From assembly GCA_030704615.1 (NCBI GenBank), contig CM060731.1, forward strand, positions 39,680,001 through 39,744,000: 64,000 nt of DNA, in the 5' to 3' direction. Positions 4,040 to 26,688 of this stretch are shown piece after piece. A model generated the notes under the pieces. That model made no database searches and was not told the origin of the DNA. It worked only from the letters and a program-made list of their open reading frames with translations. Both the position numbers and the translations under genes were made by a program. Positions within the stretch are counted from its first letter, which is position 1, and every line of letters starts with the position of its first letter. The DNA comes from Takakia lepidozioides (taxonomy: Eukaryota; Plantae; Bryophyta).

Positions 4040-6785
4040 TGTACTGGTACCCCATACTTTAGTTTGTGCAAATCTAAAACTATTACCCCACAAAAACTTT
4101 GACTGCTGTTACTTCAACATCACTGCTGTGTTGAGCATCCCAACCACCTGTGGGTTTTGCAACATGCATGGAGAAGACTCGAAATTTGAGTTTCTCCTGG
4201 TACTTTAGGTACTTTTTAAGTGTTGCTTCCATTTTGTACAAAGGCCTAAGTTAGGGTAAAGTGGGAAGCATGCAACCTCGGTCGTCTGTCTGGCGATCCT
4301 ATTATTTCCAGTGAGGTGACTGAAATAAGTGGCCCAATAGCTTGATGTTATGGTTTCACACCAGCGAGGATGTGGGTTTATGAGTTTTATTCACATGCAG
4401 ATAGGGCAATGTCTGTGAATGTGGTTTGGTGCTAAATCTGCCTTCGGGGACGCTCCAAACTTTTGAGTGGGCATGCTTGACCTTTCTTACCCAGATGAAG
4501 CTCTTAGCATTCATTACATACTGGCGCCTTCATTGTACCAGACACCAGGGGATCCCTTTCTAGCTGCAGCATATCCGCTGCAGGTCCTGACGTCCAGGCC
4601 AACGAGTGCATCAACAAAGGGTATTGTATTCAGCCCATTTTTATATGAACACATGCTTTGCTTGTGTGTGTCTAAACTCAGGCTGATCAGAGCTCAGCAT
4701 CTCGTGGCAGAACTTGCTTCAAGACTTGTAAGCCAATCATCGCCATGCAGCATCAGCTTGAACACGTCCAAGCATGAAGTCGGTCTAATTCGATCGGCTG
4801 ACAAGTGGATTCATCCGTATGCCCATCCAGATCACGCTTTGCACATGTTTGATTATGAAAATGATGCTTGTAGTGTACTCAGGTTGGGATGAGCACACTA
4901 TAAATCTTTGAGCTCCCTAGTTCATTTCCATTACCAGCTCGACCTCGACTTCTGCGGTGTCTGGGCCTAGTGTGAAACGGACCTCAGTTTGCCTTGAGCG
5001 CCCACGGCTCCAATTCACCTGTCCATGGTAGAGACACCTGACTGCTTGAGTTCTCTAGGTCTGCATGTTGCTTCAACTTGCTCTTGCCTGCCTGCAGTGA
5101 CGTTACCCACTAGTGATCGACATCATTTGTGATCCCTTGAGCTGCATATCTATTCACAACCTGATCACGAGGCTTTGTATGACCCCCTCCATCTCTTCAA
5201 ACATAATGTATGAAATATGTGTAGTTGATCACGTGTGGCTCTCCTGTGGCTCCTTGTAGGATTTATTAGGTGATGACTTTCTTACGCATGAGTTTCGCAG
5301 ATAATTTGCGCTAGATCTGATGTGCACGCTACGGACTTGACTCCATGCAGACACAAGGCAAGGTACCTACTTGTACGAGTTCTAGATTATTGTATTGCAT
5401 GGATAGCATGAAAACCAGGAATCCCTTGCCAGCTCCTGCACACGATAATTTGATTCACGCTGTGCTGACTGTCTTTGCAACCAGTGCAGAAATTCAGCGT
5501 CATTGTCCGACCAAGTTTCATGATGAATTCTTCCATCCTGCTTGCCGTCCTGTGCTTTTCCCTTCTGGCCAGCACAGAGGCCCTCACTCACCGCAAGGCT
5601 CGCGTTCGCATTGTCAACAACAGCGGAAGAAATATCCAATCCAGTAGCATCTACGTGGCCCACAAATACAGCAACGTCTACAAGAACCAGCTCAAGTTCA
5701 CCAAAGGCCTCAGCAATAGGGAGACAGACGATGCCGGCGGCCAAATGCTTGTCGACTATCATACGGGCATCTTCACAACTGGCGTTGACTGGTGGTACGT
5801 GACATGGGTGTTTGCCGATAACAAGGCCATCTACCAGACCGACCCCAACAACTTCAGGTGCCTTATCGACCAGGTTGAGAACATAGGCCCCACTGCGCTC
5901 GCCTCTGCCGCAGCCGCCATTGCAGGGGTTGCTGCTTGCGGATTCCCTCCAGTCGCCGGGTGCGCAGCGTCCCCAGCCGCGGCTGCAGGTGCTGCGATCG
6001 CCGCAGATGCCATCTCGAAGGCTCTCCTGAGTGACGAGGCGACTTGCGGGTTCAAGCGGTACATGCTGGAGTCGGAAGATGACATGAATTCGTCGGGGGA
6101 TACTTGGGTAACCATCAGTATAAATGGCAACAACGAGCTGACCTTTTCGTCCCCGTCGGGATCTGCCGCGACTGTGTACGACGAGATCGAGATCCGGCCA
6201 GATGGGACGGTGATAATTGACACGGCCAACTTCTCAGCAGCTCGCGCGGCCGCTGCAGCTCGTGCTTTTGGAGTCAAAATCCCCATTGCCGCCTGCAAAT
6301 CCGAAGAGCACCTACTCCAGAGTGTGGATCAGATCGTCTGAAAATGTCTTCTTGTGGTTACTTCCCTCTTCATGTAGCTTCACGTACATGCATGCAGTGA
6401 ATGACCGCCTTTGACAGTATAAGTCTACCTTCTGTTGACATGAATCTATGTTATATATGTCTAACCTTCTTAATATGCTGCCCGACGGGCATTATAGCAT
6501 ATAGTGAGGGTCCGCTTTGAAGAGTGTGTGTTCGAAACTTCTGTATGCCAATCTTGACATCGCGGTATGACATACTTAAGTCTTCTACCGAGATTCATAA
6601 TAAACTCAGTTGGGTGATTTTACTGGATTAGACACTTTGTATCAATCTGAATCCTGATGTGGAACCCAAAAGCAACTAAACTACTAAGGCCATGACCTTG
6701 ATCACCGTGCACACTTTGACTGACTAGTATGTCCATGATTTTTTGGGTGTTATGGAGCACTACAAAGAACAGAAGTACAGCTAAG
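4040..6785 (+). repeat. Duplicated unit carrying PUD-like gene copy 1 with its promoter and 3' flank
   Basis: Aligns by eye in inverted orientation with about 14395-17860. From about 4585 onward it aligns in direct orientation with about 23770-26075. Confidence 0.85.
5520..6341 (+). CDS. Secreted PUD1_2-like (up-regulated in daf-2 domain) protein, copy 1, 273 aa, intronless
   Basis: First true ATG is at 5520 (MMNSSILLAVLCFSLLASTEA, signal-peptide-like). Motifs RVRIVNNSG, VAHKYS.VYK, VDYHTG..TTGVDWWYVTW, DPNNFR, GFKRYML.SED and FSSPSGS match the PUD1_2 family as I recall it. Confidence 0.8.
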   Translation: MMNSSILLAVLCFSLLASTEALTHRKARVRIVNNSGRNIQSSSIYVAHKYSNVYKNQLKFTKGLSNRETDDAGGQMLVDYHTGIFTTGVDWWYVTWVFADNKAIYQTDPNNFRCLIDQVENIGPTALASAAAAIAGVAACGFPPVAGCAASPAAAAGAAIAADAISKALLSDEATCGFKRYMLESEDDMNSSGDTWVTISINGNNELTFSSPSGSAATVYDEIEIRPDGTVIIDTANFSAARAAAAARAFGVKIPIAACKSEEHLLQSVDQIV

Positions 6786-7289
6786 TTACCTACATGAATG
6801 GGATGGTGTTGGTTGGATATGTGGGAAGGTGGTTGTGATAAATCTGTGAGTGAATTGTCAATCCCATATTGCAACCACTGCATCGAACGTCTGGGGAATT
6901 TAACAAGAGAAGCTCTTGAAGTGATGTCTTAGATTGATGCGGCATGACAAATTCGAACTGACTTCACACAGATGGGTGCATGACATTAACCCACATAAAA
7001 GTGTAGACATTTTCTTTCCATACCTATTTCTGTCTTCATCTTCTTCAACCACTGAATTCCTCTGAGACAAATTGTGAGCTGCTTTCATTATTGGTGAGGG
7101 TACTGTATCCATCTTTATGATTACTTAGCTAATGGTATGGCTTGCATTCTCTACTGTACATGTACCGAGTAATGGATCATTTTTCATTGCCAGACCGCGA
7201 GAGTAGCACACTTTCTTGTATCATTTTCTCATAAATCTCCAACCATACCAATACCCTGCTCCAAGTAAATATGATATCCAGTTTAGGCA

Positions 7290-7470
7290 TTTTTATACAT
7301 CCACCCTGGTCTCGCACTTGGCATGCATGTTGACAAGGGTGTTGAGTAGAGAGCTGTGTGGATTGAATCCCATTTCTGATGATATGGCAGTGCACCAGCT
7401 CTCCCTTTGCTGGGCATTTTATGCTGATGCACTTTTTTGCAAGAGACAGGAATAAGTATTCTGCAAAATG
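7290..7470 (-). pseudogene. Degenerate PLS-class PPR fragment
   Basis: EYLFLSLAKKC...KGELVHCHIIRNGI, then a frameshift into STLVNMHAKC. Confidence 0.55.
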
Positions 7471-8090
7471 TGCAGCACCTCTGTCAAATGTCCTGCAATG
7501 TGTACTCACATCCGCTGGAAGAGTTGTTGTTGACTCCCTCTCTTGGTCCTTATTCAAAAGCGGCCGAGTGCAGGTGTCCAATCAAGCAACTGTGCCTCAT
7601 TCAACTTTTCTGTCTGCTTGAGGTGGAACTCTTATATGATCCACTGAACAGTACCCTATCTCCTGTTGATTGTGGTTGACCTTGTGCCATGGCAGATAAA
7701 TGACCAACCCTCAATCCAAAGGCCCGCCTATGTGCCCTTATGAGTCTGGTGATCTTGATCTTTTTCTTGACTGAATTCACAGCTTTAACCACCGCCTTCT
7801 CTGCTTTAACCACAGAAGCTCAAAGCCTCTATACGGGGAACCCAAAATGCCTGCTACCAAGGAAGTAAACCGATACCAAAAGTAAAAACCGCTTGTAACT
7901 AAGAGCAGAATTGTGGTTGATTTTAAGCTACCTAATACAATACTGTTGCCAGCATCATTCACAAACCCTCCCTCACCTCGCATAGAGAAAAGGGCAGACA
8001 AGCCTTTGTGGCTTTGAAACTAGAATCTGAGATTGTTGTATCTGCCAAACGAAGACATGTTGCATATCCAGGTCTATGCTACTTGATGGA

Positions 8091-8520
8091 TTAGAATTGT
8101 TGCCGGATGACATCTGGTACAATTCCAGCTTTGCCATGGACCTCTTCGCCCTTTTTCAGAGCTGCCAGGCTTGCACACGCATTGCAAATGCACACAAACG
8201 TGATGTGGTCGGGCTTTACCCCTTCCACCATCATTCGATCATAGGTCTCCAAAGCCTCCATATGACGTCCCTGCTGTGCATACCCTGTAAGCATCGTGTT
8301 CCATGACACCACATCTCGTTCAGCCATAGTGTTGAAAACTCCCTTCGCATCCGTAATGCACCCACATTTGGCATACATGTCCACCAGGGCAGTGTTCAGA
8401 ATGACATTTGGTACAATTCCAACTTTGACGAGGTCACCATGGACCTCTTTCCCTTTTTCCAGAGCTCCCAGGCTTGCACACGCATTGCAAACACAAACAA
8501 ATGTGATGTGGTTGGGACAA
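8091..8520 (-). pseudogene. PLS-class PPR repeat fragment (RNA-editing factor type)
   Basis: PNHITFVCVCNACASLGALEKGKEVHG...NVILNTALVDMYAKCGCITDAKGVFNTMAERDVVSWNTMLTGYAQQG. Truncated at both ends. Confidence 0.85.
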
Positions 8521-8901
8521 AGTACTCTTTCTCTTAGTTCTCTTCTACAGAGAACATATGAAACCAGACAAAGGAAATTCAACTAGAAAACTACATACAA
8601 GTAGAACAACATATATCTAATCTGAGAGCCTAAAAAAATGTAAACTACTTACAAGTACAACAAAAGAACAGAAAACGGAATGACAACAAAAAAATTGGCA
8701 TGTCTACCAATAATTTCCAACTTTCCTTCTCATGCAACTCCATCTCAACGCAATCACCATTTGGTGTATAATCAAATGGCTACACTTGTCAATTTTTGTG
8801 ACCTGGGGCTCTGACCTCCAAATTTCAACCTAGCACTAAGAAGACATCTGACAAGCACATTCCAATGTGTCACCTATGGCTTCATCAAATGCTATCTCTT
8901 T

Positions 8902-9175
8902 CTAGCTTTCCAAAGTTAAAGCTTTGGACAAAGCTTCACTCATCTGGTCTGCAGGATATTCAAAATCCACAATGCCACCTGGAAGAATTTTGTCATAGAC
9001 AGCGTGATCAAACTGGCCATGCCCATAGAGTGCCATCACTATCACCTTGGCAAGCCCTGTTTCCCTGCATTTCAGTGCTTCCCGTATGGTGGCTGCTATG
9101 GCATGTGTGGGTTCGGGTGCTGGGATGATGCCCTCAGTGTGTGCAAACTTCAAAGCCCCTGCATAATCCACGTTT
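8902..9175 (-). pseudogene. Isolated C-terminal exon of tryptophan synthase beta chain type 2 (TrpB2-like)
   Basis: FAHTEGIIPAPEPTHAIAATIREALKCRETG.AKVIVMALYGHGQFD; the canonical motif is LCGHGHFD. No upstream exons were recognised. Confidence 0.8.
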
Positions 9176-9414
9176 CCGACATGTTAGGCCAGCAAACAGA
9201 TCTACATGGCACTTTCTTAACATCTGAAATAAGAACCAGACCTTGGATTGTGGTTGCAGTGAATTTCTTGAGTGAGAATGGCCAGACACAGCAACCATCC
9301 AAAACAATTGCTAAAAACAAGCTTCAGCAGACAAACCAGCCCTAATTCAGCCTTGTTGTGTCTTTAAATATGGCAAGAATCTGAATTTATGTGGCCTTGC
9401 ACTAATGGCAAAGA

Positions 9415-9662
9415 GCTGTAGGGCGGCCAGGCTCGCACACGCACACAAACGTGATGTGGTCGGGCTTCACCCCTTCTCCCATCATTTGCACATAGGTCTC
9501 CAAAGCCTCCATCCGCCCCTGCTGTGCATACCCTGCAAGCATCGCGCTCCACGACACCACATCTTGTTCAGCCATAGTGTTGAAAACTCCCTTAGCATCC
9601 TCGATGCACCCACATTTGACATACATGTCCACCAGGGCAGTGTTCAGAATGACATCTGGTAA
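9415..9662 (-). pseudogene. Second PLS-class PPR fragment, paralogous to 8170-8410
   Basis: PDVILNTALVDMYVKCGCIEDAKGVFNTMAEQDVVSWSAMLAGYAQQG...GVKPDHITFVCVC. Confidence 0.85.
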
Positions 9663-9966
9663 TCTGGCAGGCATTCACCTTTTTGCCTTGGTTGTCCCAC
9701 TATGAATGGGGTCAGAAAAGTATTCATTCCACAGCTTCTCCTCATCTCTGTTACCTGATTTTGGATACTTTCCTGTTGTCACATTGGCAGTATCATGTCA
9801 AAGTCACTCCAAACTAGATTCACTCAACCAGCTAACTTGCAGAATGCAACATGGAAATTTAGGGCCAATTCTGATAAGAGGGAAAATGAAATGTGTTGAC
9901 GAAGGTGCCTTCATTAGCAGTGCCTGATTTATCAATCAGCTCACACTGCACTTAATGTTGTTGGTT

Positions 9967-10245
9967 TTACCAGTAATCCCCACAAGATTGGAAATGGTGA
10001 AAGCATCCCGAACAATAACTTCTCGCCCAACAATCTTTGGGATGAACTTGGCGGCCGTATGGCAGTCACCGCACACCTGAAGGTTCTTGTTGATGCGAAT
10101 AGGCGTCCCAGGGGAAGCCCAAAAGAAATGGCCCGCTTCTCACTCTGGTGGCCAAGAGAAGTTTCGTTCTGCTCCTCCTCCACATCATGCAATACAAAGC
10201 GAGTGTCGGGTGCATACCCCATTGCCTTCATCTGCCACAATCTCC
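9967..10245 (-). pseudogene. Frameshifted DYW deaminase domain of a PPR editing factor
   Basis: [20 protein letters not shown]...[13 protein letters not shown], then frameshifted [47 protein letters not shown]. The HSE motif is altered to QSE. Confidence 0.85.
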
Positions 10246-10530
10246 ACTCTCAAGCAGCATCGTCCCTTCCCCGCGCTCCCGGTTATTTTCGGGCAATTCG
10301 GGCAGGCAGACAGTTTAGACAGTTCAAGTTCAGTTTTCGGGCAATCCGGGCAGGTTCCAAGGAAATTGCCGACGACGATGACATGGCGATGAAACGTGGC
10401 GACGATGACGTGGTGACGATGACGAGGCACTATGGCACCCACTACGCTAGCTTCCGACCTTCGGTCATCGCTAGAATTTAGAGTGGATGTTACTCACACC
10501 TGCGGATGATAAATTATGTAGAGACTAAAC

Positions 10531-11405
10531 CAGTGTTGTGCGGGTTCTGGCTTTTTAAGGAACCCGCCGGGTCCGGGTGCGGGTTTTTTTCGGAGCCAAG
10601 TCCGGGTCCGGATCCTGGTTTTTGAAATTTGGAAAATCCGGGTCCGGGTTCGGGTCCGGGTTTGTCAACACGGACTGGGGTTTGGGTCCGGGTAGTTGTT
10701 GGGAAATATTAGCGGGTTCACAAGTTCGGATCCAGGTCCTAATTTATTGATTAAATAAATTAGAAAATTAAGATTAATTAGGGATAAATTTATTTTTGGC
10801 TGGAAAAAACTTTAAATCCTAATAATGAATTTTATTTTAAGAGACATTCCTTCAAAATATACCATGAATATGAATATGTATACCATGAATAAGAATTAAA
10901 TTAAGTTTGAGTTCCATTTTCTATTTTTCAATATCAATTCTTTAAACATGTTAAGAATAGTAATATGCCTCAAGGGTAGATCACTATAGCATGGATGTGT
11001 GGGATCTGGCATATTAATAATATATGACGTCTCCTTTGGGAGGTGTAAATTATGGTCCCATAGGGCACAACTTTGTGACACCACTCCGGGGGTTGAACCC
11101 ACAACCGCTTTTGAGGTGGTTTGTGGGCATTACCACTGGGCTACAACGTGGTGGGGCTGGCTGACCTATTGCTGCTCGTCCCCTCCACACATATGACAAA
11201 ACCTACCAGATCTAAGGTGGACTCCGTATGCCCCATCTAAATTCCCCTGACCTGACCCGCCCCTGACCCGCTACATTGGCCCACGGGTAGCGGGTTTAAC
11301 GGGTTCTGGACCCAGCAGGCGGGTCCGGGTCCGGTTCCGGGTTCATTTTAGAAATGAATCCGGGTTAGGGTCCGGGTTTTTTGTGATAGCACGCGCACAA
11401 CACTG
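10531..11405. mobile_element. Non-autonomous hAT-type element (MITE), 875 bp
   Basis: TIR CAGTGTTGTGCG...CGCACAACACTG. 8-bp TSD GACTAAAC at 10523-10530 and 11406-11413. CGGGT subterminal repeats. The paralogous empty site is at about 27653. Confidence 0.9.
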
Positions 11406-11780
11406 GACTAAACCTTGTTGCTTGAAAGCAGCAAATTACGAAGCAATTTAGGGCTTTAAGGAAAACAGGAAACACGGCGTGTTTAGTGCTTAGTGTAGGA
11501 CGAAGAAGACGAGTGTGAGCCGGCTACACTTTTCACGACCCACAAATTGCTGAGCACTACACTGGAGGATTTTCGTGCCCTGCACTGCGTGCAGCGACAA
11601 TCTGGATGATGGCGTGAGCGTGGCGAAGCAAAAACCAAGGCTTGGAAATCACTCATATACCTGGAGAGCTGGAGACTGCACCGACTACAGGTTTGAAAGT
11701 GTTTTCTCTCTCTCTCTCTCTGCCTCTAACTCTGGATTTCTCACATGGTTACAGAATTTGACATCGAGGTATGATCTTGT
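11406..11780 (+). pseudogene. Duplicated promoter and exon 1 of the TAD3 gene
   Basis: Near-identical to 27653-28035, with deletions in the exon. The sequence left of the MITE (10478-10530) matches 27607-27660. Confidence 0.8.
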
Positions 11781-12658
11781 TATGTCTTGTTATCTTCCCT
11801 GGGCCTAAAACTTCTTGTTAGTAGGTCCATCTGCAGTACCACATTGTAGGTACTAAGATATCTTACTTGCAAGTATACTTGAAGACGTGGTTCAGCTTCC
11901 ACACAGGCTTCTAACTTATATCCAGTTCCAGAATCCACACACACCTCGAGGACAAACAGGGCTTTTCAAGTGTGCCAATATCGTTGATTTACATTCAATG
12001 TCCACATAAATTTGGCTAGTGGATCTGTCTGGATCCCTGGATTTCTGCCAACTTGTTCACTTTGCTCCAGTTTTGCCCAGGCCTATTTTGGTGTCCCTGA
12101 ATACAAAGTTGCTGCCCTCCACCTGGATTGCTATTTGGACAAAATATTGGCTTGTGCTAGGTGTTTTCAAAACCTCTTTAAATGTAGACAAATATATCAG
12201 CTTCTACTCAAGGTTCAGACTCCAAGCCCATAGAGCAGCAATGAACATATCCGTGACTGCTGGTGTCAAGGTGCTGATAAGAAACCCTTCAAGAGAGGTT
12301 TTCATTTAACGGAAAATTTATGGTGATGCCTCCCAGAAACCCCTGCAAAAGGCTTAAACCAGAAACTGTGTAGAGGGTAGGGAGCCCGTCACCTTACCTC
12401 CTCTGTGGAGTCATAATTAACCTTCCAACCACCATCAATGTTGTACACTTCCTCTTCCCACCACCTTTCCCTTCTCTCTTTTCGTCTTCCCCTTGCTTTC
12501 TCTTCTGCGAGCTGAACCGTCCACACAGACACTCGTCACCACGTTTGACAGCTGAAATGGGCGGCTGTACTAAGTGTGGAAGGAATTTTGAAGGATAAGG
12601 AAAGTTCTAAGAAACGAGGATAGATTCCGGGCAAGGAAAAAGGGGAACGTACAACTGG

Positions 12659-12991
12659 GTGGGAAAAACGTCCAGCAGAGATGTCAATCCTGCCACTTCA
12701 AGCCATAGAAGTGTGGACATGTGGCCATCTGATGGTATTGCTCTGGCCCTCAGGTGTCGAGCTCCGCAGTTTATTTGTAAGAAGGTGGCAGAGGAAATAG
12801 TTGGCCCAGTTATTAAAAGTGATGAAAAGGTAAAGGAACAGATTGATCCGCTGAACCGACCAGGATTGCAAGCTCGTGGAGACATTCCTACTTCAACAAT
12901 CTTCAACAATCTATCCTACTATGTTGCGCAAAGTTCGCCAGGGGCATTGACAGTGTTTTTTGAGGATGATGATATGCTCACAATGCTCTAA
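12659..12991 (+). pseudogene. Fragment of a bifunctional nuclease (BFN/DUF151-like) domain gene
   Basis: SVDMWPSDGIALALRCRAPQFICKKVAE resembles the family motif D.RPSDAIALA.R..API. Upstream sequence is interrupted by stops. Confidence 0.55.
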
Positions 12992-13305
12992 GTTAGAGCG
13001 TTTTGTCTTGATAGTGCTTATATTGAGCTCCGGAGTCAGGCTGTACAGTGCTGTACATGTCAAAATCGATTGTGTATATGACTGTTTGATATTACAGATG
13101 TGGTCCAGTTAACTGGGTTTGCAGTCCTGGACATGGTTTCTGCGTGATAGATGGCAATGCTTGGATGGCAATGCTTGAGATTGAGTTCTACTTCTGGACA
13201 GATTTATCGTCCGTACTTTGCCATTTGGACTCCTGATTGCCCTTTTGTTTTTATACCCAATCAATACAACTGCAAACTTGTATCTGAATTGATCAAAGCA
13301 CTCAC

Positions 13306-13697
13306 CATGCGCGCCAGAATCCCTTTGGCTCCTTTCTTTCTGCCTCTCTGAGGGTTTTTGGTTTTCTGAGCACTGACACAAATACAATATAGATATATAT
13401 TGTATATTACAATTTGTAATTAAAAGGTAAAAGGTGGAGTGAAGCCTTTAGTTTGGACCACTGATTGTGCATGTAAGTAGCGCATTACATTGTGTTTTGG
13501 GGTGAGCTCTTTGTTCCAAGAACTGAAGCAAAGCTTTGCAGTTCATTTTGCAGGAAAGCCCAACAGCTGTTCCTTATTGGCAGACGTCACTTGACAATTT
13601 ATGATGGCAGGAATGGACTGAATGATCAACTCCTGTATATGCCTCCAAGGGGCCTATTTGTAATGGTACCTGATCTGCAACTTACTGTACTGGTATA
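13306..13697 (+). repeat. ~390-bp segment duplicated in inverted orientation at about 20097-20481
   Basis: ORF-track translations are near-identical (MFWGELFV.RTEAK...) on opposite strands. Both copies end in 27-bp satellite units. Confidence 0.85.
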
Positions 13698-13784
13698 GTC
13701 TAACCTCTTTAATATGACACCTAGAGGAAACGGAAAAAATGTCATAATATGGAGGTGTCACATAATCGATAATATAACAAATGG

Positions 13785-16700
13785 GACATGGCCTTTCAAG
13801 CGTTATTGAAAGACCTTCGCTGCCTAGAAAGTTGACGTCGAGATCACAATTCATCTTCCAGTTTTCTCTTTCTCTTGGGCTCTTTTCTAGGAGAGTTTTG
13901 GAGTTTCAAGAGAGGCAATGCCCTTACAGTGCGACGTACGTGAATCACAACTACTAAATCCCAAGCTTCAGGACTGCTGAGTTGTCTGCCACAATCACAA
14001 CTGAACTGCAGCTGCACTAATACAGATATATAGCACCCACTCCAGTACACCTGAAAAGCTATGCATAAATCAGCTATATATTCAAGGTCTGCATGCTGAT
14101 TCCCAACTCCCAGCACTCGGGACTTTCAAGCATACACGGGCGTACATACAAGGTCGAGCAAGATACATTCTGTGGTTAATGAAAATCTAGGTACACATGT
14201 TCAGTTTGGACGGATTTCGCAATCAATTTCTTCATGAGACTTGCTGGAGACTTGTACCCCAAAATTTGTTTGGGAACACTTGTAAAGTCAGAATTCAAAT
14301 CTCAACAGGTCACAAGTGCAGCGCATCATGAATGGTGAAGGCACAACTAATTTAGACTACCTTGCCCAGTTGCACCCATCATGTACGACGAGGGTGTGTA
14401 GCTGTACTTCTGTTCTCGTAGTGCTCCATGGTAACACCCAAAAAAGTCATGGACAAACCTGTTAGGTGCCAAGAACGAGGATAGAAGGAACCAGTTCTGA
14501 AAGGATGCTGCGGCAACTGCTATAGTTCCGGTTTGTTTGGGTGAACCGACAGTTGCAGGTTGAGGCGAGCAAGCTTGTGAGCATGAAGGCGATTGAAGGC
14601 TAGGGATTTTCAAGATGTCAAGTACAGAGCAGCGTGAAATGGAAAAGATAGCCGTGAGGCTGGTGGCTGGTTTTGGGCAGATTTGAATCTAGATGACGTT
14701 CACTGCGATGGTGGGGTGGACCGGTAGAGTTACTCGGTAACGTGCACTTGTAATTAGTTTGCTAGTGCTATAGATCTTAGCTAGTTTTACTGTTGCTAGG
14801 AACCAGGCCGTGGGGCCCTCATATGTAGAGGACAAAGTTATGTGAAATCTTGTCAATAGAGCTTCAGAGCAAAAGCACTTTGAATTGGCTGGATTTCTGT
14901 TGCGTGATGAAAGACGAGTCAGCCAAAGTGTGCAGGGTGATTTAAGGTCATGGCCTTAGTATGTTTAGTGTCTTTGGGTTCCACACATCTTGATCAAGGA
15001 TTCAGATTGATACAAAGTGTCTAATCCATTAAAATCACCAAACTGAGTGCCACTTTATTATGAATCTCGGTAGAAGACTTAAGTATGTCATATGATGTCA
15101 AGATTGGCATACAGAAGTCTTGAGCACACTCTTCAAAGCAGACCCTCACTATATGCTATAATCCCTGTCACAGCATATTAAGAAGGATAGACAGATAACA
15201 GAGATTCATGGCAACAGAAGGTAGACTACTGTCATAGGCAGTCAATCACTGCATGCATGTACGTGAAGCTACATGAAGAGGGGAGTAACCTCAAGAAGAC
15301 ATTCTCAGACGATATTCTGATCCACACTCTGGAGTAGGTGCTCTTCGGATTTGCAGGCGGCAATGGGGATTTTGATTCCAAAAGCACGAGCTGCAGCGGC
15401 CGCGCGAGCTGATGAGAATTTGGCCGTGTCAATTATCACCTTCCCATCTGACCGGATCTCGATCTTGTCGTACACAGTCGCGGCAGATCCCGACGGGGAC
15501 GAAAAGGTCAGCCCGTTTTTGGCATTTATACTGATGGTTACCCAAGTATCCCTCGACGAATTCATGTCATCTTCCGACTCCAGCATGTACCGCTTGAACC
15601 CGCAAGTCGCCTCGTCACTCAGGAGAGCCTTCGAGATGACATCTGCGGCGATCGCAGCACCTGCAGCCGCGGCTGGGGACGCTGCGCACCCGGCGACTGG
15701 AGGGAGTCCGCAAGCAGCAACCCCTGCAATGGCGGCTGCGGCAGCGGCGATCGCTTTGGGGCCTAATTTCTCAATCTGGTCGATGAGGCACCTGAAGTTA
15801 GTGGGGTCGGTCTGGTAGATGGCCTTGTCATCGGCAAACACCCATGTCACGTACCACCAGTCAACGCCAGTTGTTCCGAAGCCCGTATGATAGTCGACAA
15901 GCATTTGGCCGCCGGCATCGTCTGTCTCCCCATTGCTGAGGCCTTTGGTGAACTTGAGCTGGTGCTTGTAGACGCTGCTGTATTTGTGCGCCACGTAGAT
16001 GCTACTGGGTTGGATATTTCTTCCGCTGTTGTTGACAATGCGAACGCGAGCCTTGCGTTGAGTGAGGGCCTCTGTGCTGGCCAGAAGGGAAAAGCACAGG
16101 ACGGCAAGCAGGATGGAAGACTTCATCATGAAACTTGGTCGGACAATGACGCTGAATTTCTGCAATGGTTGCAAAGACAGTCAGAACAGCGTGAATCATA
16201 TTATGGTGTGCAGGAGCTGGCAAGGGGGTCCCTGGTTTTCATGCTATCCAGTACAATCAGAGTACAAGTAGGTACCTGCCTTGTGTCTGCATGGAGTCAA
16301 GTCCGCAGCACATCAGATCTCGCTAGCAATTATTTGTGGGACCTACTGGGGCTTCTGATAGAGTACTTAGCAGGCAGATATAGATTTACTAGTCTAATAA
16401 TTTCGAAACTCATTAGTAAGAAAGACATCGTCTAATAATCCAAAAAGCCACAGGAGAGCCACAAGACTCAAGTGATGATCATCAACTGCACATATTTCAT
16501 ACATTCCATTTGAAGAGATGCAGGGGGATGTGCAATGACTTCTTGCCATTCAGACTCGTGATCAGATGTGAGTAGTGATGCAGCTCAAGGGATCACAACT
16601 GATGTCGATCATAAGTTCATGTACTGGGTATAATCGTCACTGCAGGCCGGCAAGAGCAAGTTGAAGCAATATGCGGACCTAGACTACTCATGCAGTCAGG

Positions 16701-17203
16701 TGGCTCACCATGGACAGGTGAATTGGAGCCGTGGGCGTTCAAGGCAAACTGAGGTCCGTGTCACACTCGGCCCAAACACGCAGAAGTGGAGGTCGAGACG
16801 TGGTGATGGAAATGAACGAGGGAGCTCACAGATTTATAGTGTGGTCATCAAACCTGGGTGTACTACAAGCATCATTTTCGTAATCAAACATGTGCAAAGC
16901 GTGATATGCATGGGCAGATGGATAAAACTGAGCATAATCCACTTGTCAGCCGATCAGTACGTACAATTAGACCGACTTCATGAATGCTTGGACGTGTTCA
17001 AGCTGATGCTGCATGGCGATGATTGGTCTAACTTACAAGTCTTGAAGCAAGTTCTACACGAGATGCAGAGCTCGATCTGATCAGTTTGAGTTTAGATATG
17101 TTTTAACGTTTTAACACACACAAACAAAGCATGTGTTCATACAGAAATGGGCTGAATATAATACCCTCTGTTGATGCACTCATTGGCCTGGCAAGTCAGG
17201 ACC
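13785..17203 (-). repeat. Left arm of a large inverted repeat (partner 23770-26688)
   Basis: Continuous inverted similarity, e.g. ORF 13844-14116(-) versus 26321-26572(+), and the PUD gene with its promoter. This arm has an extra ~450 bp at about 14460-14915. Confidence 0.85.
15305..16129 (-). CDS. Secreted PUD1_2-like protein, copy 2, 274 aa, intronless
   Basis: ATG at 16129 with an intact signal peptide (MMKSSILLAVLCFSLLASTEA). About 90% identical to copy 1 by eye. Confidence 0.8.
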   Translation of the reverse strand: MMKSSILLAVLCFSLLASTEALTQRKARVRIVNNSGRNIQPSSIYVAHKYSSVYKHQLKFTKGLSNGETDDAGGQMLVDYHTGFGTTGVDWWYVTWVFADDKAIYQTDPTNFRCLIDQIEKLGPKAIAAAAAAIAGVAACGLPPVAGCAASPAAAAGAAIAADVISKALLSDEATCGFKRYMLESEDDMNSSRDTWVTISINAKNGLTFSSPSGSAATVYDKIEIRSDGKVIIDTAKFSSARAAAAARAFGIKIPIAACKSEEHLLQSVDQNIV

Positions 17204-17837
17204 TGCAGCGGATATGCTGCAGCATCCGAATAACTTAGCACACATAACTAGAAATTCAAAACAAAGCGGCAGGGATCCCTGGACACCATCTCTCCCCCCT
17301 CTCTCGCTTTCTTTCAGCGCAGGCACTGCCCCCTGGTCTGGTACAGACAGATTTAGCACCAAACCTTATTAAGCTTACCCCTTGATAAACAGGGTTCCAT
17401 TCCCTTTCTTTTAAAAATAAGATAAAATAAAAAATGTTAGACTGCTGTCACTTTGACAACATCACTGCTGTGTTGGGCATCCCAACCACCTTTGCAACAT
17501 GAATGGAAAAGACTCGATTTTGAGTTTCTCCTTGTACTTTGGGTACTTTAATTTAAGTGTTGCTTCTACTTTGTACAAAGGCCTAGGGTAAAGTGGGAAG
17601 CATCCAGATTTCAACCTCGGTCGTCTGTCTGGCGATCCTATTATTTCCAGTGACTGAAATGAGCTTGATGAGCTTGCTGTTATGGTTTCACACCAGCGAG
17701 GATGTGGGTTTATGAGTTTTATATTCCACATGGAGATAGGGCAATGTCAGGATGTGGGTTTATGTATTCACATGGAGATAGGGCAATGTCTCCGAATGTG
17801 GTTGGGTGTTTGATAGTAACTCTAGATTTGCAAAAAC

Positions 17838-18160
17838 TAAAGTTGCCGATGGGGTACCAGTACAGTAAGATCGGGTACCCTTACACTAATTAAGTTGCAG
17901 ATCGGGTACCAAATGTTACACTAATTAAGTTGCAGACCGGGTACCATTACACTAAGTTGTAGATGGGGTACCGTTACAGTAAGTTGCAGATGGGGTACCA
18001 TTACACTAAGTTGCAGATGGGGTACCATTACAGTGATACACGAAGTTGCAGACCTGTTGCAGATGGGGTACCATTACAGTGATTACACTACGTTGCATGG
18101 GGTACCATTACACTAAGTTGCCGATGGGTAGATCGGGTACCAGTACACTACGTTGCCCAT
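17838..18160 (-). repeat. 27-bp minisatellite, inverted relative to 22428-23225
   Basis: Repeats of AAGTTGCAGATGGGGTACCATTACACT, roughly 11 degenerate units. Confidence 0.9.
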
Positions 18161-19409
18161 GTATGGAATAGCAAAAAGATGAACGCAGGCCCGGGACATC
18201 GGTACAGGACTGAGTTAAAAATCATGGTTTTGGCCTGGAGCCCGGGCTAGCCTAGCTTCATGCCCTGGACAGCGGGGTAGGTGTGGGAACTTTGGGGAAC
18301 AATTTTAGAGCATTTGCGGTCAGCTACCCAGAAATGAACGGCCGAGATTTGATGTAGGATTTCGATGGTGACGATTTCGTCTCTCTCCTCTCCTCCGTGT
18401 CTCTTGCCTTGCCCAAGCTCTTGAATCTATGTAGCCGAGGATACATTCCTAAAAAGATTCTACAGCCTAGGCCCGGGCCCCTAGTCCCGGGCTACCTGCT
18501 TATATATACGTTCCGTATATCAATAAGTACATAACGTATTTTCCAAGTAGTTTTCGGACTGCTGCCCGGACAGGAAGCCGAGAACCCAAGCTAGGGTTTT
18601 TCGCAATGCAATGGAGGAGGAACTCTGATCAAATAAAACCTGCTCTCCAAGCTGTTGTGCCCGTACTATTCACCCAAAATGATATACGTACAGACAGTAA
18701 CTGCAAGGGGAACAGGCTCTTATATACACTAACGTCGGTTGGTGTCACCTCTATCTCTACATAGTTACACATCAACTGTCCAGCCCAGTGATTGCAGGTG
18801 ACAAGCGCCAATGGGCCATACTTCTGGGTTTGTTAGCCGGTGAAGGGCCTCCGCTAGCAGTTTCCACAGGCCCATCAGGGCTTGTTCCCGTAATTAAGCT
18901 CCCAACTCGCTTCCTCAATGATGTTTGCTGAGCTGGGTGCACACGTTCGTCAGACCAAAATCATCGCTAGAGTCCTCATCAACACTCTGCCTTCCTCCTG
19001 CAACAAAAGAGAAGTAGCTGTCATAAACATAACATTGTCAAGAGGGATAATAGCAGACCTGAGCTCTTATCTCTCACATAGAGGGTCATAATATTCATTG
19101 AGAGTATTAAATCCTGTATTTTTGGTTTCTCTAGCCTACATAATTGCAAGTAACCTGCTTGGCATTTATTTCTGAAATGAGTTCTTCCCATCGGTTGTCA
19201 TTTTGGTGGTGGTACCATCCCAATCCATAATTGATCTATGTTGGCCAGCAAACGGCTAAGCTTCCCCAGTGCACTCAAGCTCAAGAAAGGTTACCTACTA
19301 CCCATAACTGCAGGTGAAGGTTAAAGGTTCGCATTGGAAATTTTCATTTTCAATTGGATGATAGATATTGCATCCATTTGCAAGTTTCTAATCTGGTCCA
19401 ATATAATAA

Positions 19410-19500
19410 CTGACTGGTGTTGACATAGCTCTAGCTAATAACAGCTCATGTATATACTTTGCCTGATTAAGCTTTAGGCCAAAATGATCTTCCAATGACA
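19410..19500 (-). mobile_element. Small Ty1/copia reverse transcriptase remnant
   Basis: Minus-strand translation EDHFGLKLNQAKYIHELL...MSTPV resembles the copia RT motif GL.LSQ.KYI.DLL...STP. Confidence 0.4.
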
Positions 19501-20480
19501 TGACATGATAGAAGCTGGGTCTACACCTGGAAAGCTAATATGCAATTTCTCCATAACACAGAACCAGTACATCCAAGAGAACAGTGAGAGCAGTTGCTGA
19601 CATGATTGAGATATACAAGCTCCTCAGGTCTCATTCGACCTACCAAGATATTGTAGTGGTCTGTCATCATTGTAATCAGGCCAGCACCCGAAGCAGTGCC
19701 CTCTGGAAGAGATAAAAATGCCTACACACAGCATGAGAACCGAGGAAGTGAGAAACAGCGCCGGTCCAGAATCCTTCAATTCTGGCTGAAACCTGAATGG
19801 ACACGCTCTGAGGTTCCTGCCACTTTTCTATGAACCCTGAAATATTTCTCCAGCAAATGTCTCTTTCGTAAAGCAGTACATTTCATGGATCTTCAACCGC
19901 TCATGACTTGAATGCCAATTGTGACAGGTGCTGCGCTATGACAGCGCTATGACGTTATACCGGGAGTGTAATGTACTCCTCAAAATATAATGTACTCCCC
20001 AAAATATAAGGTACTTATGTACTTACCCTAAAATTTGTCCAGATAAGCGTACTCAAACTAGGAAGAAAGTGATGAGGTTCTTTACGTTGCAGATCGGGTA
20101 CCAGTACAGTAAGTTGCGGATCAGGTACCATTACAAATAGGCCCCTTGGAGGCATATACAGGAGTTGATCATTCAGTCCATTCCTGTCATCATAAATTGT
20201 CAAGTGAAGTCTGCCAATAAGGAACAGCTGTTGGGCTTTCCTGCAAAATGAACTGCAAAGCTTTGCTTCAGTTCTTGAAACAAAGAGCTCACCCCAAAAC
20301 ACAATGTAATGCGCTACTTACATGCACAATCAGTGGTCCAAACTAAAGGCTTCACTCCACCTTTTACCTTTTAATTACAAATTGTAATATACATATAGAT
20401 ATCTATATATGTTAGTGCTCATAGAACCAAAAACCCTCGGAGAACCAGAAAGAAAGGAGCAAAGGGATTTTGGCGCGCAT

Positions 20481-21510
20481 GAAATGAAATGAAATGAAAT
20501 GAAATGGTGCTTTATAACGTCCGCGGCGGGGAAAGCTCATAGAGCTTATGGGACAAAATGGAAAGAAAAACATGAGAGAAAACAAGAAACCAGTGTCAGA
20601 GAAAAGAACTACTGTTCGAGTGGTTGTCTAGGGGTGAATGCCTCGTGTAGGTAGGCTGCCAAGCATTTCTGATCTTCATATTGAAAGACTTCAGTGAGAG
20701 ATTGGGTTCCACGGAATAGACAATGGAATCTCCCACGGATCTCATAGTATAGAGGGCAATAGAAGAAGAAGTGTTCTTCAGTATCAATTTCCTGGTTGCG
20801 CCCTGTGCAATCTAGACAGTGGCGGTCCTCCCGCTGCAGGTTTTCTCATCTGCCAGTCTCTATCCGTAGGTTGTGGGAGCCCACCCTGGACCGTCCCAAA
20901 GTCCTCAGGAGAGAAGGAGATAAAGAGGCCGAAAGGTAATTTGGCCGCAAGATTCTATCATCTCGGAGAACCAAGAATGTTTCTCGATAGAAATGGATCT
21001 TTGTCGTGAGGTTGGGTAACTTCCGAGTTCTTCTAACATGTAGCTCCATGAGCTCATTTCTAATGAGTTGGTTGCGGTCATGCTTGGATGTGATGTCCAC
21101 CTCTTCTGGGTTCACCGGCAATAGTGAAACAGTAGAGAGTACATGGCGTTCAAAAAAAGGAACCACATGGGCATACTAGGATTGTTTGAAACCTGCATTT
21201 TTTAGTCTAATAAATGTCGCAAGGGCCCTGGTCACAAGCCCCTTGGGAGGAAGGGCTTGTAACCTATGCAGGAAAATTGTAAGCTGGAAGAGGGCCTCAG
21301 TTTGAAGTGGCACGCAGGCGAATTCTGCATTCAGAGGGAGGGAGTTGCGAGGGAGTTGTGCCTCTGGCGCCAAGCATTGCTTGGAGGAAAGATGAGTGCA
21401 ATGGTTCCAGATTCTTTTCCCACCAAGAAACTGGGACCGCAGATGCCCAGAATTCACAACCAAAAGTGGCATTTGAGTGGACCACGCTATCAAACAGCCA
21501 TGGTTACCTG
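20481..21510 (-). mobile_element. 5'-truncated non-LTR retrotransposon (RTE/RTEX-like) with a (CATTT)n tail
   Basis: C-terminal LINE motifs FGCEFW, YLSASLSPSLLRTLGRSRVGSHNLRIETGR, C..C...DTEEHFFFYCPLY. GAAAT x5 tail at 20481-20505. Confidence 0.75.
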
Positions 21511-21905
21511 GCCCCTTCACAGTGGACATGTCCCGGGATCCATCTTCGATGTTGACCTTCCCACATCTAAATTATGTCTGCTCTTCCACAATTCCCTTTT
21601 CTTCTTTCTCTTTTTCTTCTTTCTTTTGAGCTACCTGTACAGCATGAATGAGAAGAGGCCTTCTTTAGCCGGGCTTGTCATGTCATATTGTAGCTGATCT
21701 CACGCAAAAACAACTGATCAAACTGTTATCAGAATTTAACACATGCAGTTGTCCACCAACACCATGTGTATTATGCGGGAGCTTCGAGGTGCTGGCTTGC
21801 CCTTTCGTGGTGGCCCAGTGCTTGGGGCACAAGGCATTGCATCCACGCTTTCCTGTACAAGCATCGACGAGCGTTTGTGAGAGATTTCGAGTGTGATTCT
21901 TCTCC
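21505..21905 (-). repeat. Segment duplicated in inverted orientation at about 26765-27050 and 27390-27548
   Basis: Shared translations LEISHKRSSMLV and LTQKQLIKLLSEF, and the shared sequence 'catgtcccgggatccat'. Confidence 0.75.
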
Positions 21906-22427
21906 ACTCGGTTTGTTTTTCAATCACGATAAGAGGTCGCATTATCGAATAATACCTAAAGATCACTAAATTGACAAGCTAAACTTCTATGTTTGAGAAA
22001 GAAAAGTGTCCAAGGTTGTTTGTTGTTGCCTACTAAGATTGGCAACAGTCATTTTGTTGAGTTTCCAGTTTATAACATCAGCAACATTAAAAGTTTGAGG
22101 GTTATCAAGTATGAAATGAGACAACATCTCCGCATGGTGTGACACGTGGTGGCTGCTCATCTACGTCACTTGGATCCACATTAAGGTCAAAATCATGAAG
22201 ACAAAAAAAAACCCTAAAAACCCTCCACCTGAAAACGGTAAAGGGACAAGAGAACACCCAAAACATTTGATCTCATGTTCCTTATGTATGTTCCCAATGT
22301 CCCAAGCCCAAAGGTTGGTGGGTCCCACCACATTAAAATAGTATAAACCTCCTTAATATGACAAAGTAGGGGTCTTGGAGTGTCATAATAAGGTCACATA
22401 ATCGAGAGTTATATTAGGTTATACTGT

Positions 22428-23225
22428 ACCCCATCGGCAACTTAGTGTAATGGTGCCCGATCTGCAACTTAGTGTAATGGTGCCCGATCTGCAACTTAGT
22501 GTAATGGTGCCCGATCTGCAACTTAGTGTAATGGTGCCCGATTGCAACTTAGTGTAATGGTGCCCGATCCAACTGCTGCCCTGGTGCCCCATCTGCAACT
22601 TAGGTGTAATGGTGCCCGATCTGCAACTTGTAATGGTGCCCGATCTGCAACTTACTGTAATGCCCGATGGTGTAATCCCGATCTGGCAACTGCAACTTAC
22701 TGTAATGGTGCCCGATCTGCACTTAGTGTTGGTCCCGATCTGAACTTAATGTAATGGTGCCCGATCTGCAACTTACTGTAATGGTGCCCATCGGCAACTT
22801 ACTGTAGGTGCCCGATCTGCAACTTAAGTGTAATGGTGCCCGATCTGCAACTTAGTGTAATGGTGCCCGATCTGCAACTTAGTGTAATGGTGCCCGATCT
22901 GCAACTTACTGTAAGGGTGCCCCATCTGCCACTTACTGTAACGGTTCCCGATCTGCAACTTACTGTAACGGTACCGATCTGCACTTACTGTAAGGGTACC
23001 CGATCTGCAACTTACTGTAAACCCGATCTGCAACTTACTGTAATGGTACCCGCAACTTACTGGTACTTACCCATTTGCAACTTACTGTAATGGTACCCGA
23101 TCTGCAACTTACTGTATGGTACAAAACTTACTGTAATGGTACCCGATCTGCAAATATAAGTGTAATGGTACCCGCTCTGCACCGTAGTGTACTGGTACCC
23201 CATCTGCAACTTACTGTAATGGTAC
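22428..23225 (+). repeat. 27-bp minisatellite array (AGTGTAATGGTGCCCGATCTGCAACTT), about 29 units
   Basis: Directly visible tandem. It produces the spurious VPDLQLSVM repeat ORF. Confidence 0.95.
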
Positions 23226-23229
23226 GGTG

Positions 23230-23769
23230 AACCACGGCAACTTTAGTTTTTATGTAGAGTTATCACCATCGTTGGACTGGTATATATGTGAAGGACTGCT
23301 ATATGTACTGGTATATGCAATGGTATTAGATACCAGACCAGTCTGGTATCATTTGGGAGAATACTTGGTCATATACCAGACCAGGCTGGTATCAGTTGTT
23401 CATACCAGCCACAATACCAGTACTCCCCTACCGTCTTCCGAAAGTCATTTATTCTGGTATGTGTACTATACCCGTACTATACTAGATTATGCCTACATAC
23501 TTGTACTTATGTATACTTACTTCTTTATGTGTATTGTATCTGTTTTCACTTGATACAGTTTGCTATTTGATAAACTTGTAATTCAAAATGGCTTTGAAAT
23601 GATACCAGAGTTGATATCTCATAGCAACTGGTACTGTGGTCATGATACTCATATTCATTCCAGTATCTGGAAAAAATACATCCACCATTAGACCAGACCG
23701 GTGTGAAAGTTTTGTGATACGTCTCGTACCAGTCTGGTATGTCCTAAACCTAATACCAGGACAACACTG
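23230..23769. mobile_element. Probable truncated hAT MITE (right end only)
   Basis: Ends in CAACACTG at 23762-23769, the same TIR terminus as the 10531 element, exactly where similarity to the PUD promoter unit begins. ATACCAG/CTGGTAT subterminal repeats. Left TIR not found. Confidence 0.55.
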
Positions 23770-26688
23770 GTCCTGACTTGCCAGACCAATGAATGAGTGC
23801 ATCAACAGAGGGCATTATTATATTCAGCCCATTTCTATATGAACACATGCTTTGCGTGTATGTGTTAAAACATAACTAAACTCAGACTGATCAGATCGAG
23901 CTCTGCATCTCGTGGCAGAACTTGCTTCAAGACTTGAAAGCCAATCATCGCCATGCAGCATCAGCTTGACCACGTCCAAGCATTCATGACTTCAGTCGGT
24001 CTAATAATTCTACGTACTGATCGGCTGACAAGTGGATTATGCGCAGCTTCATCCGTATGCCCATGTATATCACGCTTTGCACATGTTTGAATACGAAAAT
24101 GATGCTTGAGTATACTCAGGTTTGATGAGCACAATATAACTCTGTGAGCTCCCTAGTTCATTTCCATCACCAGCTCGACCTCCCTGGGCCGAGTGTGAGA
24201 CGAACCTCAGTTTGCCTTGAGCGCCCTCGGCTCCAATTCACCTGTCCATGGTGAGCCACCTGACTGCATGAGTAGTCTAGGTCCGCATATTGCTTCAACT
24301 TGCTTTTGCCGGCCTGCAGTGACGATTATACCCAGTACATGAACTTCTGATCGACATCAGTTGTGATCCCTTGAGCTGCATCACTATTCACAATCTGATC
24401 ACGAGTCTGAATGGCAAGAAGTCATTTCTTGCCTCTCCTTCAAACGTCCGAATGTATGAAATGTGTGCAGTTGATCACTTGTGGCTCTCCTGTGGCTCTT
24501 TGGATTATTAGACGATATCTTCTTTACTAGTGAGTTTCGCAATTATTAGACTAATAAATCTATCTGTGCCTGCTAAGTACTGTATCCGAAGCCCAGTAGC
24601 CAGTAGGTCCCACAACTAATTTGCGAGCGAGATCTGATGCGCTGCGGATCACTTGACTCCATGCAGACACAAGCCATATTAAGGTACCAGCTACTTGTAC
24701 TCCAGATGATTGTACCGGATAGCATGAAAACCAGGAACCCCCTTGCCAGCTCCTACACACCATAATTTGATTCACGCTGTGCTGACTGTCTTCCAATCAG
24801 TGCAGAAATTCAGCGTCATGGTCCGACCAAGTTTCACCTGTGCTTTTCCCTTCTGGCCAGCACAGAGGCCCTCACTCATCGCAAGGCTCGCGATCGCATT
24901 GTCAACAACAGCGGAAAAAATATCCAATCCAATAGCATCTACGTGGCCCACAAGTACAGCAGCGTCTACAAGAACCAACTCAAGTTCACCAAAGGCCTCA
25001 GAAATGGGGAGACAGACTATGCCGGCGGCCAAATGGTTGTCGACTATCATACGGGCATCTTCACAACTGGCGTTGATTGGTGGTACGTGACATGGGTGTT
25101 CGCCGATGACAAGGCCATCTACCAGACCGACCCCAACAACTTCAGGTGCCTTATCGACCAGGTTGACAACTTAGGCGTCGCTGCGCTCGCCACTGCCGCA
25201 GCCGCCATTGCAGGGGTTTCTGATTGCGGATTCCCTCCAGTGGCCGGGTGCAAAGCGTCCGCAGCCGCGGCTGCAGGTGCTGCGATCGCCGCAGATTCCA
25301 TCTCGAAGGCTCTCCTGAGTGATGATGCGACTTGCGGGTTCAAGCAGTACATGCTGACGTCGGACGATGACATGCATTCGTCGGGGGATAACTGGGTAAC
25401 CATCAGTATAAATGGCAACAACGAGCTGACCTTTTCGTCCCCGTCGGGATCTGCCGCGACTTGGTACGACGAGATCGAGATCCGGTCAGATGGGGCGGTG
25501 ATAATTGACACGGCCAACTTCTCAGCAGCTCGCGCGGCTGCTGCAGCTCGTGCTTTTGGAGTCAAAATCCCCAATGCCGCCTGCAAATCCGAAGAGCACC
25601 TACTCCAGAGTGAGATCGCCTGAGAATGTCTTCTTGTGGCTACTCACCTCTTATGTAGCTTCACGTACATGCATATATTGCAGTGAATCGCCTGTAACAG
25701 TAGTCTACCTTCTGTTGACATGAATCTCTGTTATCTGTGTAACCTTCTTAATATGCTGTGACAGGCATTATAGCATATAGTGAGGGTCTGCTTTGAAGAG
25801 TGTCTCCAAGACTTCTGTATGCCGATCTTTACATCGTATGTCATACTTACGTCTTCTACCGAGATTCATAATAAAAGTGGCACTCAGTTTGGTGATTTTA
25901 CTGGATTAGACACTTTGTGTCAATCTGAATCCTGATCAAGATGTGTGGAACCCAAAAGACACTAAACTACTAAGGCCATGACCTTGAGTCACCGTGCACA
26001 CTTTGACTGACTGGTTTTTTGTCCACGAGTTTTTTGGATGTTATGGAGCACCGCAAGAACAGATAAGTACAGCTACACCCCCTCGTCGTACTTGATGGGT
26101 GCAACTGGGCAGGGTAGTCTAAATTAGTTGTGCCTTCATCATTCATGATGCGCTGCACTCGTGACCTGTTTAGGCTTGAATTCAAGTCTTCCTCCACTTG
26201 TCATGAAACCCAAACAAATTTTCGGGTACAAGTCTCAAGAGCTTGCTTGTGAAATCCGTCCAAACTGAACATCATGTGTATCTAGATTCTCATTAACCAC
26301 AGAATGTATCTTGCTCGACCTTGTATGTACGCCCGTGTAAGTCCCGAGTGCTGGGAGTTGGAAATCAGCATGCACACCTTGAATGTATAGCTGATTTATG
26401 CATAGCATTTCAGGTGTTCTGGAGTGGGTGCTATGTATCTGTATTAGTGCAGCTACAGTTCAGTCGTGATTGTGGCAGACAACTAAGCAGTCCTGAAGCT
26501 TGGGATCTAGTAGTTGTGATTCACGTACGTCGCACAGTAAGGGCGCTGCTTCTCCTGAAACTCTATAACTGATCTCAACCTAGAAAAGAGCCCAAGAGAA
26601 AGAGAAACCTTGAAGATGAATTGTGATCTCGACGTCAACATTCTAGACAGCGAAGGTCTTTCAAGACTACCATTGAAAAGCCATGTCT
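23770..26688 (+). repeat. Right arm of the large inverted repeat
   Basis: Inverted match to 13785-17203. Confidence 0.85.
24818..25623 (+). pseudogene. PUD1_2-like gene copy 3, start codon deleted
   Basis: A 28-nt deletion (TGATGAATTCTTCCATCCTGCTTGCCGT relative to copy 1) removes ATG-ATG and the first half of the signal peptide. An upstream ATG at 24818 is out of frame. The rest of the frame is open to 25623. Confidence 0.75.

Follow-up and report, generated by a model that had tools for sequence, protein, structure and literature searches.

The window analysed here, 64,000 nucleotides of the genome of the moss Takakia lepidozioides (GenBank assembly GCA_030704615.1, contig CM060731.1, positions 39,680,001 to 39,744,000 of the forward strand), carries three copies of a PUD1_2-like gene (Pfam PF18457), two of them intact and one broken, and the proteins of the window are true members of the PUD1_2 family, neither of the nematode PUD-1/PUD-2 type nor actinoporins. 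What appears to be new, on the basis of a structural model, is a helical hairpin of about 60 residues placed on the conserved pole of the beta-sandwich, present in the plant and most microbial members and absent in nematode PUD-1/2. The copies would probably descend from an old microbial gene that entered the land plants in one early gain and was then widely lost, and we propose, tentatively and with slightly less than even confidence, that the product is a secreted, membrane-binding and possibly pore-forming protein of defence against grazers or microbes. The family has one solved structure, and its biochemical role is so far uncharacterised.

Copy 1 (5520..6341, forward strand, 273 amino acids) and copy 2 (15305..16129, reverse strand, 274 amino acids) are intact by open reading frame (ORF) and Pfam match, and in copy 3 (about 24806..25623, forward strand), which also has a Pfam match and entered the analyses as an in-frame piece only, the remaining frame is open to 25623. 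An earlier note on this DNA, made from its letters alone, had recognised three related copies of PUD1_2 identity, and the profile and fold comparisons bear this out: with a gathering cut-off of 28.8 bits, copies 1, 2 and 3 score 124, 120 and 97 bits, the first two over model positions 1-170, and the AlphaFold2 model (predicted template modelling score 0.77) is a PUD beta-sandwich that matches C. elegans PUD-1 (4JDE_A) in the VIA structure comparison with a Z of 15.3 and a root-mean-square deviation of 1.6 over 124 residues, nothing besides PUD-1 rising above noise. In copy 1 the predicted signal peptide (residues 1-21, 5520..5582), recognised by inspection, by a hydropathy peak of 3.1 over 11 residues and by its conservation in P0001-P0004, is followed by the sandwich (residues 22-220, 5583..6179, from Pfam, AlphaFold2 and VIA), with invariant HKYS, TGxxTTG, DWW, GFK and SG motifs, and by a C-terminal extension of the plant members (6180..6338), modelled with low confidence. 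The residues of the conserved patch (HKY, TGxxTTG, DxW, FK..L..ED, SG) are all present in the window proteins.

The helical insert occupies residues 112-174 of copy 1 (5853..6041, forward strand, from AlphaFold2 and sequence) and measures 62 residues, beginning with an amphipathic helix of hydrophobic moment 0.70 and continuing into a hairpin (121-162) of 42 uncharged, Ala/Gly-rich residues with central prolines; two helices of 15-26 residues each are modelled, and the hydropathy of the hairpin, 1.7, is borderline. As modelled, the whole is a soluble protein with amphipathic or hydrophobic helices of membrane-spanning length, one of the features by which alpha-pore-forming toxins are recognised, albeit with that borderline hydropathy. 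Four cysteines (114, 140, 148 and 176) are conserved in the secreted plant members, with probable disulphides. The conserved patch of the family consists of the beta2-3, beta4'-5 and beta6-7 loops (Ding et al., PMC3683130), and our own mapping of the topology would place the insert in the beta6-beta7 loop, one of these three, so that in the model it sits on the conserved pole of the sandwich. Among 95 homologues the insert has a median length of 57 residues and is common to most microbial relatives; the moment of its first helix is at least 0.45 in 92%, an uncharged run of at least 19 residues occurs in 52 and a 19-residue hydropathy of at least 1.2 in 74 of the 95. The insert would therefore seem to be a rule of the family and not an invention of plants. 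A search of NCBIfam with the plant protein returned no match, and an Atlas search with the hairpin alone returned no usable one.

The architecture of the microbial relatives adds to this picture. A signal-like N-terminus is found in 79 of 150 homologues, and several of the longer members have ricin-B, jacalin, Lcl_C, PAN or PLAT domains joined to the sandwich; PUD sandwich domains occur within phospholipase C and D proteins (PMC6299612, and our domain search) and also as repeats lacking the hairpin, and at two of 14 bacterial loci a phospholipase gene adjoins the PUD gene. In Oceanospirillum beijerinckii (L019:4001-5522) the PUD gene lies 34 nucleotides upstream of a glycerophosphodiester phosphodiesterase-like, probably sphingomyelinase D-type, gene, and in L011:1878-6465 a PUD gene has on one side a patatin-like phospholipase and on the other a second gene, whose PUD domains lack the hairpin. 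Among the fungi named as carrying the family are Ophiocordyceps, Hirsutella and Clonostachys, which are parasites of insects, nematodes or fungi. From the lectin fusions, the secretion signals and the links to phospholipases it would follow that the sandwich binds membranes or surfaces and that the hairpin is the payload.

The family is transcribed. The evidence comes from X6, a probable RNA run under the same species label, whose contigs can show presence, not absence, whose depth is a rough guide only, and whose coverage takes in the transcribed part without the DNA that lies before it. Compared with copy 1 over 5790-6604, X6 record 16 (depth 36) has 42 substitutions and 15 gaps, copy 2 likewise has 41 substitutions and 15 gaps, and the alleles listed for copy 2 are those of the record, which by its sequence appears to be a transcript matching copy 2. 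In the same run a fourth paralogue, located outside the window and about 90% identical, reaches a depth of 744-961; it differs most at the hydrophobic insert, and most of the same alleles are present in the DNA run X1. For copies 1 and 3 there is no contig in X6, and in run X7 no contig of a PUD gene was found.

If these elements are brought together, a mechanism can be outlined of which, beyond the fold, we infer every step. After a single early gain from a microbe, the gene would have come under a plant promoter and gained an intron upstream, and it would now be undergoing local turnover by duplication. The protein would be exported by means of its signal peptide; with its conserved HKYS / TGxxTTG / DWW pole the sandwich would attach to a lipid or glycolipid; from a loop on that same pole the amphipathic helix would enter the target membrane together with the uncharged hairpin; and, as alpha-pore-forming toxins suggest by analogy, oligomers would make that membrane leak, the likely role being defence against grazers or microbes. 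A broader proposal, possible rather than probable, is that hairpin-bearing PUD1_2 proteins form a family of alpha-pore-forming toxins that spans kingdoms and has gone unrecognised, with nematode PUD-1/2 as a hairpin-less offshoot, that early land plants took one such gene from a microbe, and that it still serves mosses and clubmosses as a weapon, secreted in abundance against grazers or microbes. In favour of a lytic defence role is the fact that one paralogue is very abundant in X6 and differs most at the insert, and there is a precedent in the bryophyte fruit-body lectin of fungal origin, which kills moth larvae (PMC12513842).

Several observations, however, weigh against it. No significant structural match to any pore-forming toxin was obtained with Foldseek or VIA, the actinoporins (Foldseek E about 0.02, all at least 0.018; VIA Z 3.6) and domain 4 of the cholesterol-dependent cytolysins (Z 4.8) falling within noise. 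Some homologues carry short or polar inserts, the hydropathy of the hairpin is, as said, only borderline, and its AlphaFold2 confidence is 53-80. Between moss and clubmoss the hairpin shows strong conservation, where a fast arms race would predict otherwise; deletion of pud-1/2 left the survival of C. elegans on Pseudomonas unchanged (PMC3683130), although those proteins lack the hairpin; and most homologues in the trees are without a verified taxon. Between the window copies the ratio of nonsynonymous to synonymous substitution rates (dN/dS) is 1.2-1.9, and positive selection, when tested, was not significant (p 0.17-0.58). For the defensive role that the earlier note had suggested, the evidence is the architecture of the protein and not selection between the copies.

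Some of these same features would suit other functions. The 42 uncharged residues with their central prolines and probable disulphides, the great abundance of one paralogue, the strong conservation of the hairpin in plants and the induction of the nematode PUD genes by heat and cadmium (PMC3683130) could also describe a secreted, non-lytic binder of lipids or surfaces, whose hairpin would anchor in a lipid monolayer, in the cuticle or at an air-water interface, in the manner of oleosins or hydrophobins, and would serve in water-proofing or protection against stress. We consider this rather unlikely, and the bacterial lectin fusions and phospholipase neighbours better fit the targeting of other cells, nor has the hairpin any Pfam, NCBIfam or Atlas match to such families. 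Less likely still would be a lectin-like recognition, in which the conserved pole would hold on to microbes or grazers by a glycan or headgroup, so as to agglutinate or deter them, the helices being only oligomer contacts: the conserved patch is indeed aromatic and polar, the hairpin-less sandwich repeats resemble binding modules, and bryophyte lectins derived from fungi act in this way (PMC12513842), but bacterial members often have a separate lectin domain, which suggests that the PUD domain plus hairpin is the payload and not the binder. Finally, the invariance of His48 and the near invariance of Ser51 and Asp90 in 95 sequences, together with the genetic links to phospholipases, might evoke a small secreted enzyme using these three residues, whose substrates could be lipids or wall polymers, for instance, and whose lid would be the helices; since no enzyme fold was matched in the structure comparison and no activity has been reported for PUD-1/2 (PMC3683130), this seems improbable.

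As regards its origin, the earlier note had proposed that the gene derives from horizontal transfer, and a microbial origin is indeed the simplest account of a single plant clade among patchily distributed microbial genes. A profile search of the full library gave 355 clusters at 50% identity, of which the named ones belong to scattered bacteria and ascomycetes, most of the 355 representatives being without a taxon and none being named as algal; among prokaryotes at least 14 loci were found in 185,579 genomes, in scattered phyla, a count that is a lower bound. The trees are unrooted and without nematode rows, many of their rows lack a verified taxon, and fragments of fewer than 130-140 residues were excluded from them. 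In them the plants form a clade of 10 rows with support of 100/100, comprising copies 1 and 2, three paralogues of Diphasiastrum and five contigs taken as moss by their context, and the closest homologue of the window copies is P0001 (run SRR2518103), probably a moss to judge by its accession number, which adjoins those of two moss RNA runs given in PMC6839031. The transfer would be neither recent nor specific to this species, because there are orthologues in other mosses and in Diphasiastrum. The nesting within a non-plant clade, which the earlier note had named as support, does not extend to a donor: the plants are one clade among microbial rows, and patchy, but in approximately unbiased (AU) tests neither a fungal (p 0.56) nor a bacterial (p 0.53) sister group is rejected, and the sister changes between trees. 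A cyanobacterial or Agrobacterium-group sister (support 90 in one quick tree) was gone in better trees, and no donor is named. Between species dN/dS is about 0.3, and this shows long purifying selection.

That the gene did not arrive in one early gain, either because there were separate gains or a transfer between moss and clubmoss, or because it is an old eukaryotic gene that was mostly lost, would be compatible with several of these data, and we give it a minor though real share of the probability. Among the matches listed (8000 candidates) none is named from Physcomitrium, Marchantia, Sphagnum, Selaginella, ferns or seed plants; the synonymous divergence (dS) between the window and Diphasiastrum is only about 1.05, a clade of the window plus Diphasiastrum is not rejected (p 0.20), and neither the fungal nor the bacterial sister is rejected by the AU tests. 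In the best tree, however, Diphasiastrum stands apart from all the other plant rows (92/89), as in the species tree, and the dS values are additive (0.79 between window and moss RNA, 1.42 between moss RNA and clubmoss), which fits a slow window lineage, and a purely vertical descent would require very many losses. That the gene is a contaminant or an artefact of assembly is so improbable that it hardly enters the discussion: many microbes live on mosses, and the deletion of copy 3 is known from the assembly, but plant genes lie on both sides of the copies, which have a spliceosomal intron and a TATA box and whose flanks differ from each other by 7-16%; run X1, probably the source sample, has identical DNA contigs through the flanks; and the homologues in Diphasiastrum are on chromosome-scale sequence. 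The gene is therefore integrated among those of its host, and one early microbial gain is still the origin that we consider probable.

Parallel events can be observed in the other plants. In Diphasiastrum two copies with identical proteins (L001/L002) share one chromosome, oppositely oriented and separated by about 46 kb, with paralogues on two others, which, to judge by these sequences, would be a local duplication parallel to that of the moss. Variants are also seen within the plant clade (on L005, L008 and L006): P0006 and P0180 are without signal peptide, cysteines and tail, and P0008 keeps the signal peptide and has lost the motifs of the conserved patch.

Within the window, protein identity among the three copies is 83-89% and coding-DNA identity 92-96%, and each copy lies in a duplicated unit of 2-4 kb delimited by self-BLAST (4563..6783, forward, for copy 1; 13785..17748, reverse and inverted, for copy 2; 23769..26687, forward, for copy 3), the unit of copy 2 being tail-to-tail with that of copy 1 and head-to-head with that of copy 3. 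The flanks have diverged by 7-16%, against 4-8% in the coding parts. In copy 3 a deletion of 28 nucleotides between 24836 and 24837 has taken away the two ATGs together with the beginning of the signal peptide and has shifted the frame, and this copy is therefore probably a young pseudogene; the local birth-and-death duplication described in the earlier note is in this way supported, and the clear signal peptide that it had attributed to all three copies is found, by inspection and hydropathy, in copies 1 and 2 alone. The copies are also, as it had stated, richer in GC (0.56-0.57, against 0.46 for the window), and at third codon positions (GC3) they reach 0.66-0.67, against 0.40-0.47 in five other ORFs of the window. 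Since the moss and clubmoss homologues are just as high (GC3 0.65-0.70), this composition was rejected as a sign of recent foreign origin.

The genes were likewise said to be intronless, and this holds for the reading frame, which is uninterrupted, but not for the transcript, as there appears to be a conserved, homologous intron just upstream of the coding region, its splicing in Takakia being deduced by homology. The moss RNA contig L007 aligns in two blocks with L003, a related contig of genomic DNA, where some 470 nucleotides separate the blocks, and a TATA box, a first exon, a GT donor and an AG acceptor are homologous across all three window copies. In copy 1 these would be a TATA-like box at 4899..4905, aligned with copies 2 and 3 and with the moss homologue L003, a first exon at 4930..5027 (start approximate, by homology to the L007 RNA and the L003 genomic exon 1) and a GT..AG intron of 462 nucleotides at 5028..5489, all on the forward strand; in copy 2 the GT..AG intron has 549 nucleotides (16160..16708, reverse strand, with the TATA at 16838), and in copy 3 it has 555 (24251..24805, forward strand, with a TATA variant at 24135). 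In X6, the RNA contig of the abundant paralogue starts at about 5491, immediately past the predicted acceptor. By frame arithmetic, the ATG that closes the first exon of copy 1 shares the frame of exon 2, and translation may therefore begin 11 codons earlier; with either start the N-terminus is, on inspection, like a signal peptide.

Around the copies there are plant-type ORFs, of pentatricopeptide repeat (PPR), bifunctional nuclease and PsbP types. Between copies 1 and 2 lie fragments of PPR genes (8094-8582 and 9435-9661), an element with GGGTCC-rich ends and an AT-rich core (10541-11380), possibly a miniature transposon, and a short ORF with a weak bifunctional nuclease match (12659-12991), which has the look of a terminal exon or of a fragment of a gene. 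Between copies 2 and 3, within the head-to-head inverted duplication, there is a tandem array of about 31 copies of a 27-nucleotide unit (22429-23223), with a shorter inverted copy at 17926-18032. Further on, an open frame of 895 amino acids with 168-nucleotide repeats (34610-37297) has no Pfam match, one distant homologue having PF27747, and decayed retroelement-like ORFs are found at 53360-56117 and 61106-61606, with an RNase H match at 61106.

The combination of hairpin, secretion signals, lectin fusions and phospholipase links offers a testable mechanism for the whole of PF18457. Should the protein prove lytic, it would represent both a new class of pore-forming proteins and a new defence protein of seed-free plants, from which useful insecticidal proteins have been obtained before; should it not, it would still be a transcribed and domesticated microbial gene common to mosses and clubmosses. 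The surprise is limited by the fact that the horizontal gain of defence-type genes in bryophytes is an established theme (PMC12513842). The earlier note knew of no characterised plant member, and no paper on plant PUD1_2 members or on the hairpin was found in a literature coverage that left out patents and some supplements, but hypothetical proteins of Diphasiastrum are already in NCBI and UniRef. Patents exist on insecticidal protein families of clubmosses.

Among the known systems, C. elegans PUD-1/PUD-2 (4JDE, PF18457, PMC3683130) have in common with the moss protein the sandwich, the conserved patch and the clustering of paralogues; they are, however, intracellular proteins of about 150 amino acids that form a heterodimer and lack the 62-residue helical insert, and the moss protein is further set apart by its signal peptide, its C-terminal tail and its four conserved cysteines. 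The actinoporins, including the moss bryoporin (7PUD), which were the top, weak, matches in Foldseek, would be alike in the proposed logic, that of a soluble beta-sandwich which binds lipid and a helix which inserts, but theirs is a single N-terminal helix in place of the internal hairpin, and the window proteins have no Pfam match to toxins of the actinoporin or aegerolysin type, Z to the actinoporins being the 3.6 given above. The fruit-body lectin PF07367 (PMC12513842) and the fern insecticidal gene (PMC6786969) are likewise small, of microbial origin and patchy in plants; they belong to unrelated families and their activity has been tested, that of the moss PUD protein being so far a proposal. 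There are also the PUD1_2 proteins of bacteria and fungi (Agrobacterium rosae, Penicillium, Ophiocordyceps, Clonostachys, Oceanospirillum), for which no tested function was found: they differ in their 27-42% identity and in the lectin tails of many of them, and they share the sandwich and the amphipathic or hydrophobic hairpin, about half with signal-like ends. Further, there are the proteins of Diphasiastrum complanatum (O6H91_12G000900, 21G073900 and 20G060000), which, although those of a clubmoss and not of a moss, and listed as hypothetical, are 58-67% identical, are locally duplicated as well, and have in common with the moss protein the signal peptide, the cysteines and the hairpin.

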